NCBI GenBank assembly: GCA_020137815.1
Contig: CM035350.1
Span: 868,001-932,000, forward strand
Origin: Hormiphora californensis
Lineage: Eukaryota; Animalia; Ctenophora
Direction of reading: 5' to 3'
Length of the DNA stretch: 64,000 nucleotides
Shown in pieces: positions 13,350 to 32,911 of the stretch (position 1 is its first letter; every line of letters starts with the position of its first letter). The notes beneath the pieces were generated by a model. The model was given only the letters and a program-made list of their open reading frames with translations, was not told where the DNA came from and searched no databases. The position numbers were made by a program, and so were the translations under genes.

Positions 13350-13654
13350 GATGAGGCAATATATTTGTCAATCGCGATAGATGGTTTTAAGGTGACCCTT
13401 CTAAGTAGATACAATTTACATTTCGTTGAGTGTCTGTATTGTCAAAACAATGGGTCACAAAATGAGGGCGCGATCACACCAAGATCTTCGAAAGAATTCT
13501 TTCGAAGCACCAAACCCAATCACACCAAAAAGCTTCGTTTGGTTCTTGCGTGCGTATGTCTATTGCTAGTTTTTTTTTGAAAAACCGGGTTGACCGGGCC
13601 CATTAATACGGAATATAACAATAAGTGTAATCAGTACATAAAGGTTAAAATAAA

Positions 13655-16600
13655 TTAATTCGTTGCATTGTTTTTAATCAAGTATAAAATATTAAAATCA
13701 TTCCTGTCTGTAAACCGTTTAGGACTGGAACCTCGGTGACCACGGAGGCTGACAACAAGGGTTTTCAAGAGACAAAATGATAAACGTTGCCGGATATACC
13801 TTATTGAGTCTGGGTATGATTGACCGGTTTTCTCAGAAAGACGATAAGCTATCTGTTTGTATAGTTTGTCAGCTTCATTACCAACGATACCGGATGTAGA
13901 GAAGACGACGGGAGTAAAATAGCTTTTTTCCACCTGGAGGATGCGCTCTCCGTAGGCCCGTTTCTTCTCAACCTCGTGTTTCTTCAAGACCTTATCAACT
14001 GATAGAGATTTGTTTGTTGGCGCCCTAGAGTTGAAGATGCGAACATCGAGGAACAGTTTTGACATGTCAGTTTTTGACCAAACGCCACGAGCTGAAACGT
14101 CGAGACGAGCTTCATCTGTTTTGATGGCAGTTTCATATTTGAGGGTCTCCCCGGTGAGAGGCAACAAGTGGGGTTCTACAACAACGTCTCTGCAACCGGC
14201 CTCAACTAGCAGATTTGCGGTCAGGTCTCGGATCTGATTGTGCCTGAGATTAACATAGCCCCCACGAGCACAAGATAGGCAGTGTTCGATGGAATTCACT
14301 TTGCCACAAGCACAGTGGTTAGGGAAATCATGGAGAGCCAGATCGTACCGCAAAGCTAGAGCATCCCAGAATTCTGATTTGTTGAGGTTGAAACCATGCT
14401 CCGCCAGGGGGAGACTAGTTAGCCAGGTGGACGAGCCACGTTTGCACAGTTCTTCATGAAGTCTCAGCTGGTCTGGACACAGTTTCTCAGCAACCGCCGC
14501 TAACTGTTTCTTGTTGGACATAGTTTTAGCATATGCAACCTCTTCCTTGGCCACCTTCAAGCTCTTGGCAACTGACACGAATCTCTCTTCAGTAATGGTT
14601 GTGTTCTGTTCGATTATTATCTTTGAGAGAGGTGTAGTTGCAACAAGGGATCGCTGGTGCTCAAGGTCAGCGGCTGCACAAGGGTTGTCGATGCCAAGTC
14701 CCCCATTCCTGCACGGTAGTGAAAAACGTTCCCGGTGGAGAGGGGTAAAATGGTTGTTCACTGCTGCTGGAAGAAACAAGGTCGTGATTGCTGACTCCAG
14801 GGGTGCAAAAAGTTCTGAGATGTTTGGTGTTGTCCTCATCAGAAAAAGCCAGCGTTTAGAGAGTCCCATGCAGAAACCTGTGTAGGCAGCCTGGGGCTCT
14901 GTGTTGGCAATGTTTGCGATGGCCTGCACGTCTTCAACCCAACGTTGAATTTCCGGCAGGTGCACAGTTGCTCGACAGCCTATTTCTGGCTGCTATTTCT
15001 GGCTGCTATTTCTGGCTGCTATTTCTGGCTGCAAGACCTATTTCTGGCTGCTAGACCTATTTCTGGCTGCAAGCAGCCAGAAATATATTTTAGCAGCCAG
15101 AAATAGGGTCTAGCAGCCAGAAATAGGTTTTCTCTCACGTGATCTCTCTATCTCTGTATGGGATACGAGAGACGAATCGGTGAAGTGATTTGGTATCTGT
15201 AACTGTAATTGGGTATGGGATACGGGAGACGAATCGGTGAAATAATTCGGTATCTGCAACTAATTTGGTATGGGATACGGGAAACGAATCGGTGAAGTGA
15301 TTCGGTATCTGCAACTAACTGGGTATGGGATACGAGAGGCACCTCTTTTGTTTTACCGGTCCCCTAGCTCCAAACTTGAAATTTACGCCATCGAATATGT
15401 GTTATCACACCCATTGCGTCAAATCACCGATAAATAGATCTCTTATCGTGTAACTTTTCATGCCTCTTGTCACAAACAAGGTGGATGGGACCCATTATGA
15501 CAATCCATTATAATAAAAGGCCAAATTTTTGACGTCAAGGCATCGCAATCAATTATGCCGCCACCGGACAGCTCCTATGCTATACCTTCTCTCCCACGAA
15601 ACGACAAAACCACGAACACTCCTTGATCGGGAACAACATCGAGGAGGAGCCTCGACATTTGCTCCCTCTGTATGGAGGGAAGACACCAGCTTCAGGCCTG
15701 CCCTCCGAACAGGCCCACATCTCCGCTCCGGATCCTGCGGCGTTTCAACCTGTGTGCCTGCCGGGAGGTATCGAGGACCGTAAACCTGAATCCGAATACC
15801 CACATGCACATCGAGAGGACCATAGTGGACCAGTTCCTATGCGACCACCATCTTCCTCGCCAACACGTCCAGCAGCAGCGCCTGACTGAGGACAACGCCA
15901 TACTCGATCTGCAACTAATTTGGCAGGTCCCGTATCCCATACCCAATTAGTTGCAAATATCGAATCATTTCACCGATTCGTCTCCCGTATCCATACCCAA
16001 TTAGTTGCAGATACCGAATTACTTCACCGATTCGTCTCTCGTATCCCATACAGAGATAGAGAGATCACGTGAGAGAAACCCTATTTCTGGCTGCTAAAAT
16101 ATATTTCTGGCTGCTTGCAGCCAGAAATAGGTCTAGCAGCCAGAAATAGCAGCCAGAAATAGGTCTTGCAGCCAGAAATAGCAGCCAGAAATAGCAGCCA
16201 GAAATAGCAGCCAGAAATAGACTGTCGAGCAACTGTGCACCTGCCGAATTTCCTTACATGCATAGTCCCGCTGGAATTCAAGAGACCCTATGGGGGCACC
16301 AAGGTAACGATGACCGTCAGATTTGATGATGACGTCAGTGTCTGCGAATATAGATGTAGCCTCCTCAAGGTGTTCTGGCTTAACAATGAGCACAGATTTG
16401 TCAGGGCGGGGGAAATACCCATAACCGGGACCGTTGGTTACCAATGAATCCCACCACTCTCTAACACCCATAAGAGTACCCGCAGCAGCACCATCGTCAG
16501 CATAAAATATTTGATTAGGGGGAGTGGCAGAAAGTTTTTCAATTAGCGGACGGAGACTGATGCAATAAAAGGGTGAAGCAATATTACACCCTTGGGTAGT

Positions 16601-19600
16601 CCCTTCTGAAGACAGAAGAATGGTACCATCCGAGAGAAAGAGGCGAACTGGAGACCGATATAGATTTATGGCAAAGATTGAGAGTGCTGGACATAAATAC
16701 CTCAAGTTGACCAGAGCAGTCTCTCTGTTTAGGACATTAAAGGCATTACGGGCGTCAGCAAGTAAAACAGCCTGACAGTTATCATCGTCAAAAAAGTGTC
16801 GCATTGAATGAACTGCAGCCTCGGCCCCACCTTGTTGTCCAGCAGCGAGTTGTAGCGGGCCAGCAGCATGGATGATCTCTGGTTTCAGATGCTGGGCAAC
16901 AGCTCGGCCAACTATTCGACGGAGGACCTCACCAACCCCAATGGGACGGACACCCGGATTCTTGTCGAGTGCAATCAGTTTGCAGGACAGAAGGGCCGAA
17001 AGGGAACTCGGGTCAACATACACGGTGCACAATCGCCTGGTCATAAGGGCAACTTCGTGTGCCAGAGTATCAGAGGACTTCCCAAAAGCCTTACTGCACA
17101 GGAGACGGGACCAAAGTTGATAAGACATACCGCTAGGGCCAGAGCCGCCTTTGGTGGCAGCAGCAGCTCGCCTTATGGAGTCTGAGTTAAGGTCATGGAA
17201 GATGGCAGGTTGGAAAACAGGTGGGGGTTTTTCCGAGACAACATGGTCAGGACTGAGGGGAGCTGCCTCTGGGTGTTTGTCTTTGAGACTCTGAATAATT
17301 TCAGGTGTTATCTCTGGTGTAAACTAGGGATCTCTGAGGGGGGATATGGGTGACCGGGGCACGCGTGACGGGGGGTGACTCACCGGGTAAATGGGTTCCG
17401 TGGCGAGCTCCGGGGCCTCCAGCGGCGTTGGGTGACACAGGTAGATACAAACAACCGGATATGGGAGTGCGGATGAATGAGGGGTTCCCGAGGGGATGGC
17501 GTGAGTCCTATCTGGGTGATATGGGAACTCGAGATGCCGCGGGAAAAAGTGTGTAGAAGAAGTGCCGATCTCGAGTTCTTCCGGGAGCACGACCATCCCA
17601 ACCGCCCAACTCGGACCGTCAAAACGGCCGAATTGCGCGGCTCAAATGCCCGGCGCCCAGAATGCATCGTAGTGTGGCAATCTCCGCGCGCTACGTAGAA
17701 ATGGAGAAAAAAGCGGGGGATTGCCACGCCACGATACACCATATGCCCAGACAGAAATATGAGGCGTGCAACTCCCACCTAATGTGGGTGTTGCCAGGCT
17801 CACACCATCCGATCACGAACCCCCTACCCAAAACTCGAAAGAAGTGAAATAATAAATACCATAAATATGTACAAAATGAGCCCAAAATATAAAAATAATG
17901 TCACCAAGCCACACTTGCTACTCCTACACTCTCACACTACAAACAAACGAACTGCGCACTACAAAACTCACTACACATACACTCACCATACACCATGTGC
18001 CCAGACAGAAATAAGATCTGGGACACAACCTAAAAAAATTAAAAACATTAAAAAATCACACACACAATTATAAAATAAATTAAAAAGGGGAACAGTCTTA
18101 TCTGCCCAAAGTGTCTAAAAAGCCAGGGGGAGGGATGAGACGGGGTGGAAGTGTCTCATGGCAGGTATCGGTCAGCTGTCCTATCCATCCTCTGCTCTCC
18201 CGGACCCTAAACCCAGGAACCTCCGGTCCACTCTCGCTAAGGGTTGCTAAGTGTTAGGGGGGAGAGGTGGAAGGTGAACTTCCTATAACAACTAGGGGAA
18301 GGTAAATCTTCCTAACTAAACTGGGTGGAAGGTATCTTCCTAATTAGATAGGGGTGGAAGGTGAACTTCCTAACTAGTGAGAAGGTTCCTTCTCTTACCT
18401 AATGTCGGCCGGGTGCAGGCCACCGGTGTCTCCTCCTCATAACAGCTGGGAGGGTAGCTGCTTGGCGTACCACTGCCTCGGCGGCTCCCAGGAGGATGTC
18501 GGTGGGGTGCTCCGATACGGCCTTTTCCAGTAGGGTGAGGAAGAGTTGGAGCCCAAAGAACAGCCCCTTAACCCGCTTGGGGTTGGATCTCTTCCTATCT
18601 CCCCATAGTCCCCTATACCGTCTGACCTCCTTCCACGCGGTCAGTACTTCCCGGCAGCCGTTGGACAAGGCCGCGGATCTAGAAGCCAGGGATTGGCCTC
18701 CGGTGTGGTTGATCCGGTTGAGGGCCCTGTCCAAGGCTTGTTGGTGGGGTGTCAGGGCATCGGGGGGAAATACCCCCTCTCGGTCAAAGCGGTCTAGCCT
18801 GTGGTCCCACCATCTCATCACCTGGTGGTGAGTCAGGTCCGGGCTGGTGAAGTTCAAGGCCAGGTCAGGGTCGGGAGGTGGGGCATGGTCCGGGTTGGGA
18901 GGTGGGGCTCCGTCCTCTCTGGGGCCCAGTCTCTCCCTGATATCCCTCCTCTCTGGTGCCTCTCCCTGTTGTTGAGGTGGCGGGGTGGCAGGTCGAGGAG
19001 CAACAGCGACGGCAGCAGCAGCGGCAGCAGGGGGAGTCCTGTGTCGAGGGGCAGCATCAGCGGCGGCAGCAGGGGGTGCCCTGTTTGGCCCGATCCGGTG
19101 CCTCAGATCGTTGGGGTCAGCGGGCATGACTGGGGGGCGGTCACGGGTGTCAGGTGAACTGATCGGGGACCTCTCTCTCCTGCTCTCTTGGGTTGGAGGG
19201 GTGATGGGGCGGTGAGCGGCACCAGCTGGTGACCCGTCCCTAGGCCGGCTCCTCTCCGTCCAATTCTCCTGGGGTGGAGGGGCGATGGGGCGGTTAACAG
19301 GGGGAGGGGGCGGCGGTGGTGGGGCGCTAAATATGACGCCGTGTTGCGGGGGAATGGTGGGGTAGTGAGGGGCTTGGGGTGAAACCCAAGTCCCCTGGGT
19401 CCATTCCTGAGGGTGGTGGGCCACTGGGGGGAGATGGGGTGGAACCCAAGTCCTCTGGTCGAACTCCTGATGGTGAGGTCTGTAGGAGTGTTGGACCACC
19501 GGAGGGGGTGTCCCCCATCCTTGTCCCCAATCCTCCTGCTGTGGCTGGTACCAGGGCTGGTGGTTCATGGGAGGGGGTGGTGTCACCCTGCTCCTCTGGT

Positions 19601-21963
19601 ACTCCTGGGGTGGAGCCATGAAGGGGCGGAACTCCACGGGATGGGGTGGTGTCACCCTGCTCCTCTGATACTCCTGGGGTGGAGCCATGAAGGGGCGGAA
19701 TTCCACGGGAGGGGGTGGTGGTCTGCTCCTCATCCTCATGTTCTCCTGGGGTTGGGGGGCGGGGGGTCGGATAATGACGGGAGGGGGAGGTGGCGGCCTC
19801 ACTGGTACCCTTCCCGCGGAGTGGAGGGGGGTGGAGGGGGAGTCACCCTTGTTGTAGGGGTGAAGTCGCCCCGGCCTCAAGGGCTTCAGGAGGTGCTGCA
19901 CTTCTTGGTGCTGTCGAGCTCGCTCCTCTTTCTCCCTCGCCTCGCACTTCAGGAGGGCTGCCAGCTTCTCCTCGTGCAATCTCCTCACCGTGTCATACTC
20001 TGCCCTCCTAATTTCGGTCTCCAGCTGCAGCTCCTCCACCCTGTTGTACTGCCTGGGGGCTAAGGGTGGTGGCTGCACGTAGAGGGGTGCAGGACCCGTC
20101 CTGGCCGGTGACTCGAAGTTTGGGACGGGAAGGTCCGTCCCAGAGGAGGTGTCCATGGGAGTGTCCTGGACCGGTACAGTACGGGCCTCTTCCTGTTCAC
20201 CTGTTCCGGGTGTAGGTGGGGCAGTCCTGGTGTCAGGAGCTGCCGTCCGGTCCGGAGCTGTGGCGGGGGTTGGTATGGCAGTCCTGGTGACAGGAGCAGT
20301 GGTGGGGGTATGAATGACAGTCCTGGTGACAGGAGCTGTGGTGGGGGTAGGTTGGGCAGTCCTGGTGACAGGATCTGTGGCGGGGGTAGGTACGGCAGTC
20401 CTGGTGACAGGATCTGTGGCGGTGGTAGGTACGGCAGTCCTGGTGACAGGAGCTGAGACGGGGTCAGAGGAGGAGGTGGGCAACGCGGGAGGAACCGCGC
20501 TGGGGTCAAGCAGGATTGCTGCCTCCTCTTCTTCCGTTACCTCCATCACGATAGGGGTGTCCTCCCATCCTCTGGTGTCCAGGGGGGTGAGGGTGGAGGG
20601 GGGAGCGGTCCGAAACTCCTCTATCTCCGCCTCAGAGGGTTGGTGTGTTACTGACTCCCCCTTACGGAGAGCCTTCCTCTGTTTCCCCCGGAAGGACGAC
20701 CCCGTAGTAGATTCCTCCTCTGGTGCTTCCTCCACGGCCTCTACTACTTTGGCCTGGTTGTCGATCTGGAGGGTCTGGCGGAGGTGGATGCCCCGAAGCC
20801 ACCAGTTGGTGTAAACTAGGGATCTCTGAGGGGGGATATGGGTGACCGGGGCACGCGTGACGGGGGGTGACTCACCGGGTAAATGGGTTCCGTGGCGAGC
20901 TCCGGGGCCTCCAGCGGCGTTGGGTGACACAGGTAGATACAAACAACCGGATATGGGAGTGCGGATGAATGAGGGGTTCCCGAGGGGATGGCGTGAGTCC
21001 TATCTGGGTGATATGGGAACTCGAGATGCCGCGGGAAAAAGTGTGTAGAAGAAGTGCCGATCTCGAGTTCTTCCGGGAGCACGACCATCCCAACCGCCCA
21101 ACTCGGACCGTCAAAACGGCCGAATTGCGCGGCTCAAATGCCCGGCGCCCAGAATGCATCGTAGTGTGGCAATCTCCGCGCGCTACGTAGAAATGGAGAA
21201 AAAAGCGGGGGATTGCCACGCCACGATACACCATCTCAAGGGCTGCAGACGGGGTGGCACTAAGCAGCCGCATTGCAGCTCCAACTCTCCCTGTGAACAT
21301 CATACGGGCAAAGCCCTTTCTGTTCTCCGATGCTGTAGTTTTGGGTAATCTGGACTGAATGACCGTGCACTCGGATAGTAAAGTGTCAAAATCACCGGCT
21401 TGCCAGAGAGGTAAACGTCTGAGTAGGGCAGCTGAATGTTCGGCTGGTTTAGACTTTTTACCAGGGTTTTGCAACAGGAGAGGACCCATGAGATGGATGG
21501 CGGTCAGAGCAACACTCTCAAGGCCAGAAGAAGAGTTCCATTCCTTGATGAGCCGGGTGCATTCAGTTATAAACTGCTTGCCGGAACTTCCGGAAGGAAG
21601 CTTGAAAAGGTTGGGACGGAAAGTGGAAATAGAGACGAGGAGGCGTGAGAAGGAATCAGAAAGAGCTAGGCCTGACAGCTTACCCCATGATGTCTTGAGG
21701 GGAGCTGCAGGTATAAAGTTAGGAAGCCTAATACAGCTGGGACAGTACCAGTCAGGTTTGGCAGTAACTTTGGCATAGTCTGAGTCCGGGATACCAACAC
21801 ACTTTAAATGGAACCAACCGTTACAATTGTCACAAGCTACACAGGGGATGTCATCTTCTTCGTACAAGTAGACATTACATGCTGGGCAGTTGTAGCGTGG
21901 ATCCGAGGACGAGGAAGGGGGAACGCTGGTCTTGTTCGTTCTCCTCTTCAAACCTTTCGTCAT
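13655..21963 (-). CDS. CRE ORF in three pieces (21963-21234, 17310-16246, 14946-13655): PHD finger, reverse transcriptase, CCHC knuckle, restriction-like endonuclease; about 1,028 aa
   Basis: PHD CPAC..CVACDNC..WFHLKC..WYCPSC; RT KNPGVRPIGVGEVLRR, DARNAFN, GTTQG, FYADD, YLG; CACG..EHCLSC; RLE RHNQIRD..RLDV..FLDV..HEVEKKRAY. Both junctions rejoin in frame (SAALE|ITPEIIQSLKDKHP and YACKEI|QRWVEDV). Confidence 0.9.
14955..16245. mobile_element. Foldback-type non-autonomous DNA transposon inserted just after the CRE RT core
   Basis: Long TIRs (about 350 bp) starting GGCAGGTGCACAGTTGCTCGACAG, with 13-bp TATTTCTGGCTGC subrepeats; 8-bp TSD GAATTTCC (14947-14954, 16246-16253). Confidence 0.9.
17315..21233 (-). 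mobile_element. Non-autonomous LTR element (427-bp LTRs at 17315-17741 and 20807-21233) inserted in the CRE ORF
   Basis: Apparently identical LTRs with TGGTGT...ACACCA ends; 4-bp TSD TCTC; PBS-like TGGTGGCTTCGGGG 2 nt inside the minus-strand 5' LTR. Confidence 0.9.
18399..20942 (-). CDS. Pro/Thr-rich orphan ORF of the LTR element (first in-frame ATG at 20546)
   Basis: 847-codon open frame with 11-aa APVTRTAVPTT-type repeats, a coiled coil, poly-Pro and a helical C-terminus. No protease, RT, integrase or CCHC motif seen. Confidence 0.65.
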   Translation of the reverse strand: MYLPVSPNAAGGPGARHGTHLPGESPPVTRAPVTHIPPQRSLVYTNWWLRGIHLRQTLQIDNQAKVVEAVEEAPEEESTTGSSFRGKQRKALRKGESVTHQPSEAEIEEFRTAPPSTLTPLDTRGWEDTPIVMEVTEEEEAAILLDPSAVPPALPTSSSDPVSAPVTRTAVPTTATDPVTRTAVPTPATDPVTRTAQPTPTTAPVTRTVIHTPTTAPVTRTAIPTPATAPDRTAAPDTRTAPPTPGTGEQEEARTVPVQDTPMDTSSGTDLPVPNFESPARTGPAPLYVQPPPLAPRQYNRVEELQLETEIRRAEYDTVRRLHEEKLAALLKCEAREKEERARQHQEVQHLLKPLRPGRLHPYNKGDSPSTPLHSAGRVPVRPPPPPPVIIRPPAPQPQENMRMRSRPPPPPVEFRPFMAPPQEYQRSRVTPPHPVEFRPFMAPPQEYQRSRVTPPPPMNHQPWYQPQQEDWGQGWGTPPPVVQHSYRPHHQEFDQRTWVPPHLPPVAHHPQEWTQGTWVSPQAPHYPTIPPQHGVIFSAPPPPPPPPVNRPIAPPPQENWTERSRPRDGSPAGAAHRPITPPTQESRRERSPISSPDTRDRPPVMPADPNDLRHRIGPNRAPPAAAADAAPRHRTPPAAAAAAVAVAPRPATPPPQQQGEAPERRDIRERLGPREDGAPPPNPDHAPPPDPDLALNFTSPDLTHHQVMRWWDHRLDRFDREGVFPPDALTPHQQALDRALNRINHTGGQSLASRSAALSNGCREVLTAWKEVRRYRGLWGDRKRSNPKRVKGLFFGLQLFLTLLEKAVSEHPTDILLGAAEAVVRQAATLPAVMRRRHRWPAPGRH

Positions 21964-22004
21964 CACTATACCTAACCGACCGCGAGGGCCGGGTTGGAAG
22001 AGAT

Positions 22005-22047
22005 CTCAAATTAATTTGTTTAAAGTAGTGTTGAAAAGTTTGAAACT
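22005..22047 (-). other. Genomic copy of the ctenophore spliced-leader exon fused to the CRE 5' UTR
   Basis: Minus strand reads AGTTTCAAACTTTTCAACACTACTTTAAACAAATTAATTTGAG, matching the ctenophore SL as recalled. It is followed by ATCTC, not by a GT donor. Confidence 0.85.
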
Positions 22048-22500
22048 ATTGCTAGTTTTGACTCTGACGACAGTGAAAAGTATACAACAGCCATCCGCGC
22101 GCAAGAACCAAACGAAGCTTTTTGGTGTGATTGGGTTTGGTGCTTCGAAAGAATTCTTTCGAAGATCTTGGTGTGATCGCGCCCTGAATTGGCTTTCAAG
22201 TTTCAACTTCAAAAAAAACAGTTTACATTTTACCAATCGCTAGGGGCGTGCGTGGTGTACCAGGAGTGGTGAATTATGCAGCCATTCTTTATTGTGTCTC
22301 TACCTCTTTTCTCCGTGTCCTATCGCAATATAGGTACCTATGGTACACCCGCACACTTGTTCCTTTTCATCTTTAGTTTACATTTTACTCATTAGCTTTC
22401 CCAGGCTTTCTTTACATTGTTGAGTAGTATTGTTAGATTTGGTTTTAACTCTTACACATTCTATCACCTAGGGATGAGTATGCCACGCTGAACAAGTCTT

Positions 22501-32911
<10,411 letters not shown>

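Follow-up and report, generated by a model that had tools for sequence, protein, structure and literature searches.

The stretch analysed here, called the window, comprises 64,000 nt of the genome of the ctenophore Hormiphora californensis (G000:C1:868001-932000; the 110.7-Mb assembly of 45 contigs was searched throughout). Its minus strand carries a copy of a retrotransposon without long terminal repeats (non-LTR), a long interspersed nuclear element (LINE), which begins with the trans-spliced leader (spliced leader, SL) of its host. A preliminary description of this DNA had proposed an order of target-site duplication (TSD), leader, short 5' untranslated region (UTR), start codon, one open reading frame (ORF) with two insertions and a terminal A-run; the coordinates in Table 1 match this layout. 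The flanks of the element are inverted repeats of each other, in agreement with the proposed target, a miniature inverted-repeat transposable element (MITE). The element is an autonomous LINE with a single ORF; the window copy is dead, having later been interrupted by two insertions, of which one is an LTR element and the other a MITE. Each of its three ORF pieces, compared one by one, is open and runs colinearly with the 1027-aa ORF that is intact in another copy.

Table 1. Coordinates of the window element, its target and the SL RNA genes of the genome (a slash within a sequence marks a boundary)
Feature	Position	Strand	Remarks
5' TSD copy, 14 bp	22059-22046	-	AAAACTAGCAATAG as read on the minus strand
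SL-A exon copy	22047-22005	-	ends TTTGAG, then ATCTC, no GT donor
5' UTR, 41 nt	22004-21964	-	predicted CCGGCC/GGUCGG hairpin; ATG at 21963
ORF piece 1, aa 1-245	21966-21232 (ATG 21963)	-	PHD finger, Pygo/TAF3-like, aa 27-78
Insertion 1, 3.9 kb	21232-17316	-	425-bp direct repeats 21232-20808 and 17740-17316
ORF piece 2, aa 244-599	17314-16247	-	reverse-transcriptase core, YADD
Insertion 2, 1293-bp MITE	16246-14954	-	25-bp terminal inverted repeats, GAAATT duplication
ORF piece 3, aa 598-1027 and stop	14953-13655	-	CCHC motif and restriction-like endonuclease motifs
Short 3' UTR	13654-13574	-	A-run at end: 8 A, 13578-13571, last three in common with the TSD
3' TSD copy, 14 bp	13573-13560	-	AAAACTAGCAATAG as read on the minus strand
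MITE-like target, left arm	22085-22185	.	GCGCGC 54-56 nt upstream of the element
MITE-like target, right arm	13465-13565	.	96-98% inverted repeat of 22085-22185
SL-A RNA genes, head-to-head pairs 540-616 bp apart	C5:6431355/6431971; C9:4528299/4528838; C11:221871/222487
SL-A RNA genes, seven-copy cluster	C13:3181666-3195338		some copies with small indels near the Sm site
SL-B RNA gene (one found)	L109:142-185 = G000:C13:2741191-2741234; match C13:2741217		ATCAGC/AG upstream, GTAAGCTGA donor, hairpins, GUCUUUUGG Sm-like site

The leader had been recognised in the preliminary description as that of ctenophores. The 43 letters are identical to positions 2-44 of the 44-nt trans-spliced leader that the H. 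californensis genome paper reports for this species (PMC8527503), here termed SL-A. Forty-one of them (22045-22005) are unambiguous and agree with the SL in 41/41 positions, while the AG at 22047-22046 fits the SL or the TSD equally well. The window holds this one SL only, with 0 expected in shuffled sequence. As stated before, the leader is not an SL RNA gene, since it is followed by ATCTC and the ORF, and neither a GT donor nor an Sm site is present; it lies inside the 14-bp TSDs and hence within the reverse-transcribed unit.

Insertion 1 must be very recent, as its direct repeats are identical in 425/425 positions. It contains a proline-rich ORF of 802-847 aa of unknown family, for which no match was found in Pfam or Atlas. 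Insertion 2, a MITE within the ORF of the LINE, has short tandem repeats inside. The window copy is also chimeric: its first ~810 nt (21233-22045) are 92% identical to the copies on C9 and C5, the remainder (13571-17287) 72-74%, which suggests an exchange of 5' modules between subfamilies. The same chimeric pattern was seen in the pair L077/L087.

The encoded protein has an N-terminal PHD finger (Pfam E=6e-9), whose closest relatives are the fingers of Pygopus and TAF3. The following match to RVT_1 is weak (E=1e-5); the YADD motif is present, A515-D516-D517 are invariant, and a profile of the family matches R2 proteins in the PDB across the core of the reverse transcriptase (RT) with E=7e-8. 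C-terminal to the RT lie an invariant CCHC motif (C811, C813, H821, C825) and then the invariant residues of a PD-(D/E)XK-type restriction-like endonuclease (RLE; R834/H835/N836, E857, D882, D898/R900), where the profile match to residues 937-988 at the C-terminus of R2Bm is weak (E=0.011). A LINE-type RT with a YADD active site, followed by CCHC and an endonuclease of this type, places the element among the RLE-type (R2-supergroup) non-LTR retrotransposons. Public data contain many homologues at 40-46% identity, in which PHD_Pygo is often combined with RVT_1; one homologue (P0001) shows 80% identity. The insertions bear the marks of target-primed reverse transcription, namely TSDs of 6-14 bp in five copies, a 3' A-run in each, and 5' truncation in one copy, which ends inside the SL.

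A genome search with the first 605 nt downstream of the SL matched the window copy and five other places. Full SL-A heads three of them (C9:3229455, C5:1614851 and C11:6076855), in a fourth (C9:2248546) the SL is cut to 7-12 nt, with microhomology, and the fifth (L036) is an old 200-nt 5' fragment without SL and is uninformative. All copies that reach the 5' end share the junction SL/ATCTC amid unrelated flanks, each carries exactly one leader, and no longer 5' UTR was found among the family copies in the genome. The comparison of copies at different loci that the preliminary description had called for therefore came out in its favour: every other 5'-complete copy begins with a single SL, joined at the identical position. 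Because the AG cannot be assigned to the TSD in the C5 copy, its leader is unambiguously the 43-mer. The ORFs of the four other copies are intact (three of 1027 aa, one of 1012 aa). Between the C11 and C9 lineages 72% of synonymous sites differ (pS=0.72) at a dN/dS of 0.06; of their SL letters 41/41 and of their UTR letters 39/41 are identical. Relatives at 74% nt identity have the same SL and UTR, and the relative L086 (48% aa identity over the N-terminal third) still has the same SL, the same junction and a recognisable UTR. This conservation of the UTR implies strong selection on some feature of the first 85 nt. The predicted fold of SL and UTR is no better than that of shuffles (z=-1.2), and no match to the conserved UTR came up in a metagenome scan; the UTR could act as an internal promoter or a splicing enhancer, or it could bind a protein. 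Stacked or truncated relic leaders, as known from dinoflagellates, were not found in the window family copies; the only oddity is a partial triplication inside the SL of L074 (~222-280), with the 13-mer TTTTCAACACTAC three times in tandem.

In the available part of the genome paper 718 leader matches are read as leader loci, only matches >90% to SL-A were kept, and a second leader, described below as SL-B, is not mentioned (PMC8527503). Our search with the SL-A 41-mer gave 507 loci with at most 3 mismatches and 0 with the reversed control. The SL is followed by GT at 89 loci, and only 13 were found with the GTAAGCTGA donor, hairpins and an Sm-like site CCUUUUGG. The upstream boundary of these true genes reads ...CAGC/AGTTTC..., which is why the leader proper is probably the 43-mer; the cap or library chemistry may account for the first G of the published leader. 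Reading of 62 distinct SL-A loci identified five true genes and 57 heads of retro-copies. The latter fall into about 29 sequence groups, and in each the SL comes first after an unrelated flank. A DNA-encoded leader at the 5' end of a retroposed unit is thus present in the window copy and in 57/62 sampled loci. The G or AG of the SL RNA 5' end is retained in 45/70 SL heads, and many are cut at varied points within the SL; both features would be expected of an RNA template with the SL at its 5' end.

Most SL-headed groups open straight into an ORF of ~330 aa, which is ORF1-like and has no Pfam matches; for 20 other SL-headed groups, Pfam searches with the initial 1.4 kb likewise mostly gave no match, which is typical of ORF1-like proteins. 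Host genes, and not transposons, may have given rise to some of the SL-headed loci by retrocopying. Two loci (L054:1555-3021 and L066) have an SL-headed ORF with a 2OG-Fe(II) oxygenase (AlkB-like) and then a GDSL lipase domain. In L003, L012, L009, L021, L002 and L019 hammerhead-like cores (CUGAUGA or CUGAAGA, a stem, then GAAAC) directly follow the SL near position 1541, and some of these loci are head-to-head palindromes of two SLs, recalling Penelope-like elements. Rfam detected no hammerhead in these elements, only hairpin-type microRNA look-alikes below threshold. One candidate for an SL inside a 5' UTR (L006:1400-1560) was rejected; it is an SL-headed element nested right after the ATG of a PHD-RLE element of the L081 type.

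A second leader became apparent in a PHD-RLE relative with an intact 1109-aa frame (L078), which has a different 42-mer where the SL sits. This sequence, SL-B (42-44 nt, about 70% like SL-A by eye), occurs at 179 loci genome-wide, one of which is a true SL RNA gene (Table 1). Many groups headed by SL-A are also headed by SL-B at the identical junction. The best-sampled case is a 1.2-kb family (L010 and 35 further loci, e.g. G000:C1:3080894) composed of SL, one 333-aa ORF and a (TTA)n tail, which looks like a non-autonomous retroelement with ORF1 only. Among its 36/36 genomic matches to the body start 26 have SL-A, 10 SL-B and none lacks a leader, a proportion close to the 507:179 of the whole genome. 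On a tree of 24 copies the leader type changes 8 times, compared with a mean of 7.4-7.5 for shuffled labels, and pairs with SL-A and SL-B are up to 99.8% identical over 470 nt. Since the tree is star-like and weakly supported, this near-identity is the firmer fact. Alternation of the two leaders at one junction extends to four or more further groups and to a PHD-RLE relative, where the junction GAG/GTGGTCC is preceded by SL-A three times, by SL-B once and once (L077; G000:C3:9017607, minus strand) by another leader-like sequence. L077 is an intact 1140-aa PHD-RLE element whose body start equals that of the SL-A copies in 76/76 nt; what stands in its leader position ends in AATTTGAG and could be either a natural outron or a third leader.

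Variants of the junction were found in three sets: SL/CAG/GAAG (32 copies) versus SL/GAAG (3) and SL/AG/GAAG (1), SL-A/TTTCAG/CAAATG versus SL-B/CAAATG, and SL-B/..CCCTAG/GTTTATGG versus SL-A/GTTTATGG. In each pair the shorter form begins directly after an AG inside the longer form; judged by these letters, the variants follow splice-site logic. At the level of genomic sequence it is shown that element RNAs of many groups were trans-spliced before they were copied into DNA, and that leaders were exchanged between near-identical copies.

With a probability of roughly 70% we consider the leader of the window family to be a regular part of its life cycle, renewed by host trans-splicing at the terminal AG of the resident leader. 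The element would have entered the MITE by target-primed reverse transcription of an mRNA with SL-A at its capped 5' end. The genomic copy would then be transcribed from somewhere upstream of, or at, the resident leader, starting either from a host promoter, by read-through or divergent transcription, or from an internal promoter. Host trans-splicing would take the final AG of the resident leader (TTGAG in SL-A and SL-B) as 3' splice site and place a fresh capped leader on the same junction, and the re-leadered RNA would be translated and copied back to DNA. That source copies are themselves SL-headed would follow from the lack of any leaderless copy in the 1.2-kb family, and the acceptor that gives the same junction from such a source would be the last AG of the resident leader. 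By its sequence, a TAAAC/AAAAC stretch that precedes this AG by 13-15 nt could be the branch site. The preliminary description had supposed that the AG of the element's own leader serves to regenerate the 5' end. The exchange of SL-A and SL-B and the AG variants, seen in other families and a PHD-RLE relative, lend this strong though indirect support. The five copies of the window family, all with SL-A, do not themselves display it; for this family renewal is inferred, and re-splicing in each cycle is likely from the behaviour of the others.

The surroundings of the elements are relevant to where transcription starts. More distant PHD-RLE families (~33% aa identity; L073, L080, L081, L082, L084, L085) have 5' UTRs of 150-250 nt without SL, which hold perfect hairpins, e.g. 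CTCTCTGGCC..GGCCAGAGAG; the SL with a short UTR is therefore a derived alternative in this lineage. Rfam detected no match to a hepatitis delta virus (HDV)-like or hammerhead ribozyme in these long UTRs, nor in the flank, SL and UTR of the locus L032 with an intact copy. A CGCG/GCGCGC motif lies 21-86 nt upstream of all five window-family copies. In a scan of 100 nt upstream of each head (e.g. window 22046-22145; L032, L033, L034, L035, L074, L076, L086, L087) it was found at 9/13 SL-headed PHD-RLE insertions, also 21-86 nt away, versus 8/53 other SL-headed loci (Fisher p=2.7e-4); in the 3' flanks it occurs within ~100 nt in 1/5 copies, by eye and unscored. According to a ctenophore study, promoters and loop anchors in this phylum are marked by a GC-rich motif with two CpGs (PMC12221973), and our motif may be the same, which for now is only a lead. 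A plus-strand ORF with its ATG at 22501 has the element head ~440 bp away in divergent orientation. The motif data fit promoter-proximal targeting by the PHD finger together with transcription from host promoters, and sequence-directed targeting fits them equally.

On the RNA side, 3605 letters from an intact copy, made up of its flank, the SL and a further 2.1 kb, were compared with the contigs of three runs: one from a seawater metagenome, a metatranscriptome, and a small old one filed under the species label. Transcript starts cannot be read from contigs. Coverage by these contigs is very deep over the SL and thin over the body of the window family, and they join the SL to two other retro-groups known from the genome (CAGGAAGATGAATCC... 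and GCGTGAGCC...).

Several observations weigh against renewal of the leader in the window family. That all five copies carry SL-A has a chance of ~22% under random sampling of the two leaders. Ordinary selection keeps the 41-nt UTR, and selection alone could keep the SL unchanged as well. In families where a good acceptor, CAG or TTTCAG, directly follows the resident SL, most copies keep it, which means either that the weaker GAG is preferred or that many cycles pass without re-splicing. The tree behind the comparison of the two leaders is poorly resolved, as the 1.2-kb family is young. An SL-less master copy could be missing from the assembly, and no contig of the three runs crosses the 5' junction of the window family.

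An alternative is that the leader was captured once by trans-splicing and is now inherited as DNA, with an internal promoter in the SL copy, the 41-nt UTR or the start of the ORF that initiates transcription at or near the first SL letter; the window family would then need no more trans-splicing. Such an arrangement would explain the identical SL-A in all five copies, the UTR kept at 39/41 despite saturated synonymous sites and the mostly retained acceptors of other families, and it has parallels in promoters within the first 40 nt of some insect LINEs and in the Ascaris SL sequence, which is a promoter element of its own gene. Pure inheritance cannot, however, give alternation of SL-A and SL-B at one junction, as in the 1.2-kb family with its nearly identical pairs; moreover, 41/41 SL letters across about 29 unalignable groups would need the same selection in each. 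We regard it as unlikely. Far less probable is a one-off processed product, i.e. an element with its own long 5' UTR that was trans-spliced once by chance. The structured, SL-less UTRs of the distant PHD-RLE families would supply a suitable parent, but a longer UTR heads none of the other 5'-complete copies, all of which have the SL at the same junction, and relatives at 74% nt or 48% aa identity share SL and UTR. Finally, the 43-mer as an SL RNA gene or pseudogene that the retrotransposon merely adjoins, although in line with the reading of 718 leader loci and with the insertion of CRE-group and NeSL elements into SL genes, can be dismissed almost with certainty, as neither GT donor nor Sm site follows the leader, unlike in the true genes, and as the SL lies inside TSDs with flanks that differ at each copy.

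The renewal of a leader at the element's own 5' end can be compared with several known systems. SLACS, CZAR, CRE1 and CRE2 of trypanosomatids and NeSL-1 of nematodes insert site-specifically in SL RNA genes and use the promoter of that gene; the CRE clade (CRE1/2, SLACS, CZAR) has an N-terminal zinc finger of the C2H2 type. The window element resembles them as a single-ORF LINE with CCHC and RLE after the RT and in a life cycle bound to the spliced-leader system of the host. The insertion site is what links CRE-group and NeSL elements to SL genes, whereas the window element is linked to the SL by RNA processing: it is dispersed, the SL exon forms its own first 43 nt inside the TSDs, and its N-terminus is a PHD finger, with no C2H2 zinc finger in a Pfam scan of the protein. 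Insertion into SL RNA genes was not observed, the five copies residing at unrelated sites outside such genes; the 13 SL-A genes and the SL-B gene are uninterrupted, with the SL running straight into the GTAAG donor.

The likeness to R2 lies in the homologous RT and, if the read-through model holds, in the lack of an own promoter, in co-transcription with the host and in RNA processing that sets the exact 5' end. The 5' HDV-like ribozyme of R2 would here be replaced by the host trans-spliceosome, which adds a cap; rDNA specificity and an Rfam ribozyme match are absent from the window element. The ribozyme-processed co-transcript of R2 is the nearest functional analogue. In dinoflagellate retrogenes new copies are trans-spliced again, and the leader remnants are stacked and truncated. 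These retrogenes arise by reverse transcription of SL-bearing mRNAs and are recognised by DNA-encoded DinoSL remnants (PMC6050394, PMC5585692, PMC12014239). They are retrocopies of host genes, in contrast to the autonomous and non-autonomous retrotransposons of Hormiphora, which have exactly one full leader, apparently regenerated at its terminal AG, and exchange two leaders. For Hydra, ~30% of Iso-Seq reads of transposable elements (TEs) are reported to begin with an SL, so that TE RNAs can be trans-splicing substrates in an early-branching animal (PMC12220107). That case concerns the RNA level, and the part of the report available to us mentions no leader-headed genomic copies, leader exchange or self-regenerating acceptor. 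The literature searched describes neither genomic retrotransposon copies headed by a complete host leader, nor an exchange of leaders among copies, nor the terminal AG of a leader as self-renewing acceptor.

How a LINE rebuilds its 5' end without an upstream promoter is an old problem, and internal promoters and 5' ribozymes are known answers. Our evidence points to a third one, trans-splicing of the host SL, in which the last AG of the leader is the acceptor of the next round. Because two host leaders tag the copies, each insertion records the leader that its RNA received, and the process can be measured from genome sequence alone. We propose only tentatively that an entire guild of retroelements in ctenophores, represented by about 29 groups in the 62 loci sampled and by ~690 SL-A and SL-B loci genome-wide, gave up its own 5'-end machinery. 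As with genes located downstream in an operon, transcripts entering a copy would be resolved through SL trans-splicing at the resident AG, which would restore a capped and exact 5' end in each generation, and the PHD-RLE lineage may add promoter-proximal targeting, with a Pygo-type PHD finger reading promoter chromatin near GCGCGC, to secure transcription. If this is true, almost all 718 leader loci reported for the published genome are heads of retroelements and not leader genes. The sampled leader matches, being mostly heads of retro-copies, already correct the published reading, to which a second leader and the true SL RNA genes are added. Transcripts will be wrongly joined to transposons if reads that carry the SL are assigned to the leader locus nearest to them.

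Elsewhere in the window, the plus strand at 27955-29199 contains a 414-aa ORF for a G protein-coupled receptor of the rhodopsin family.

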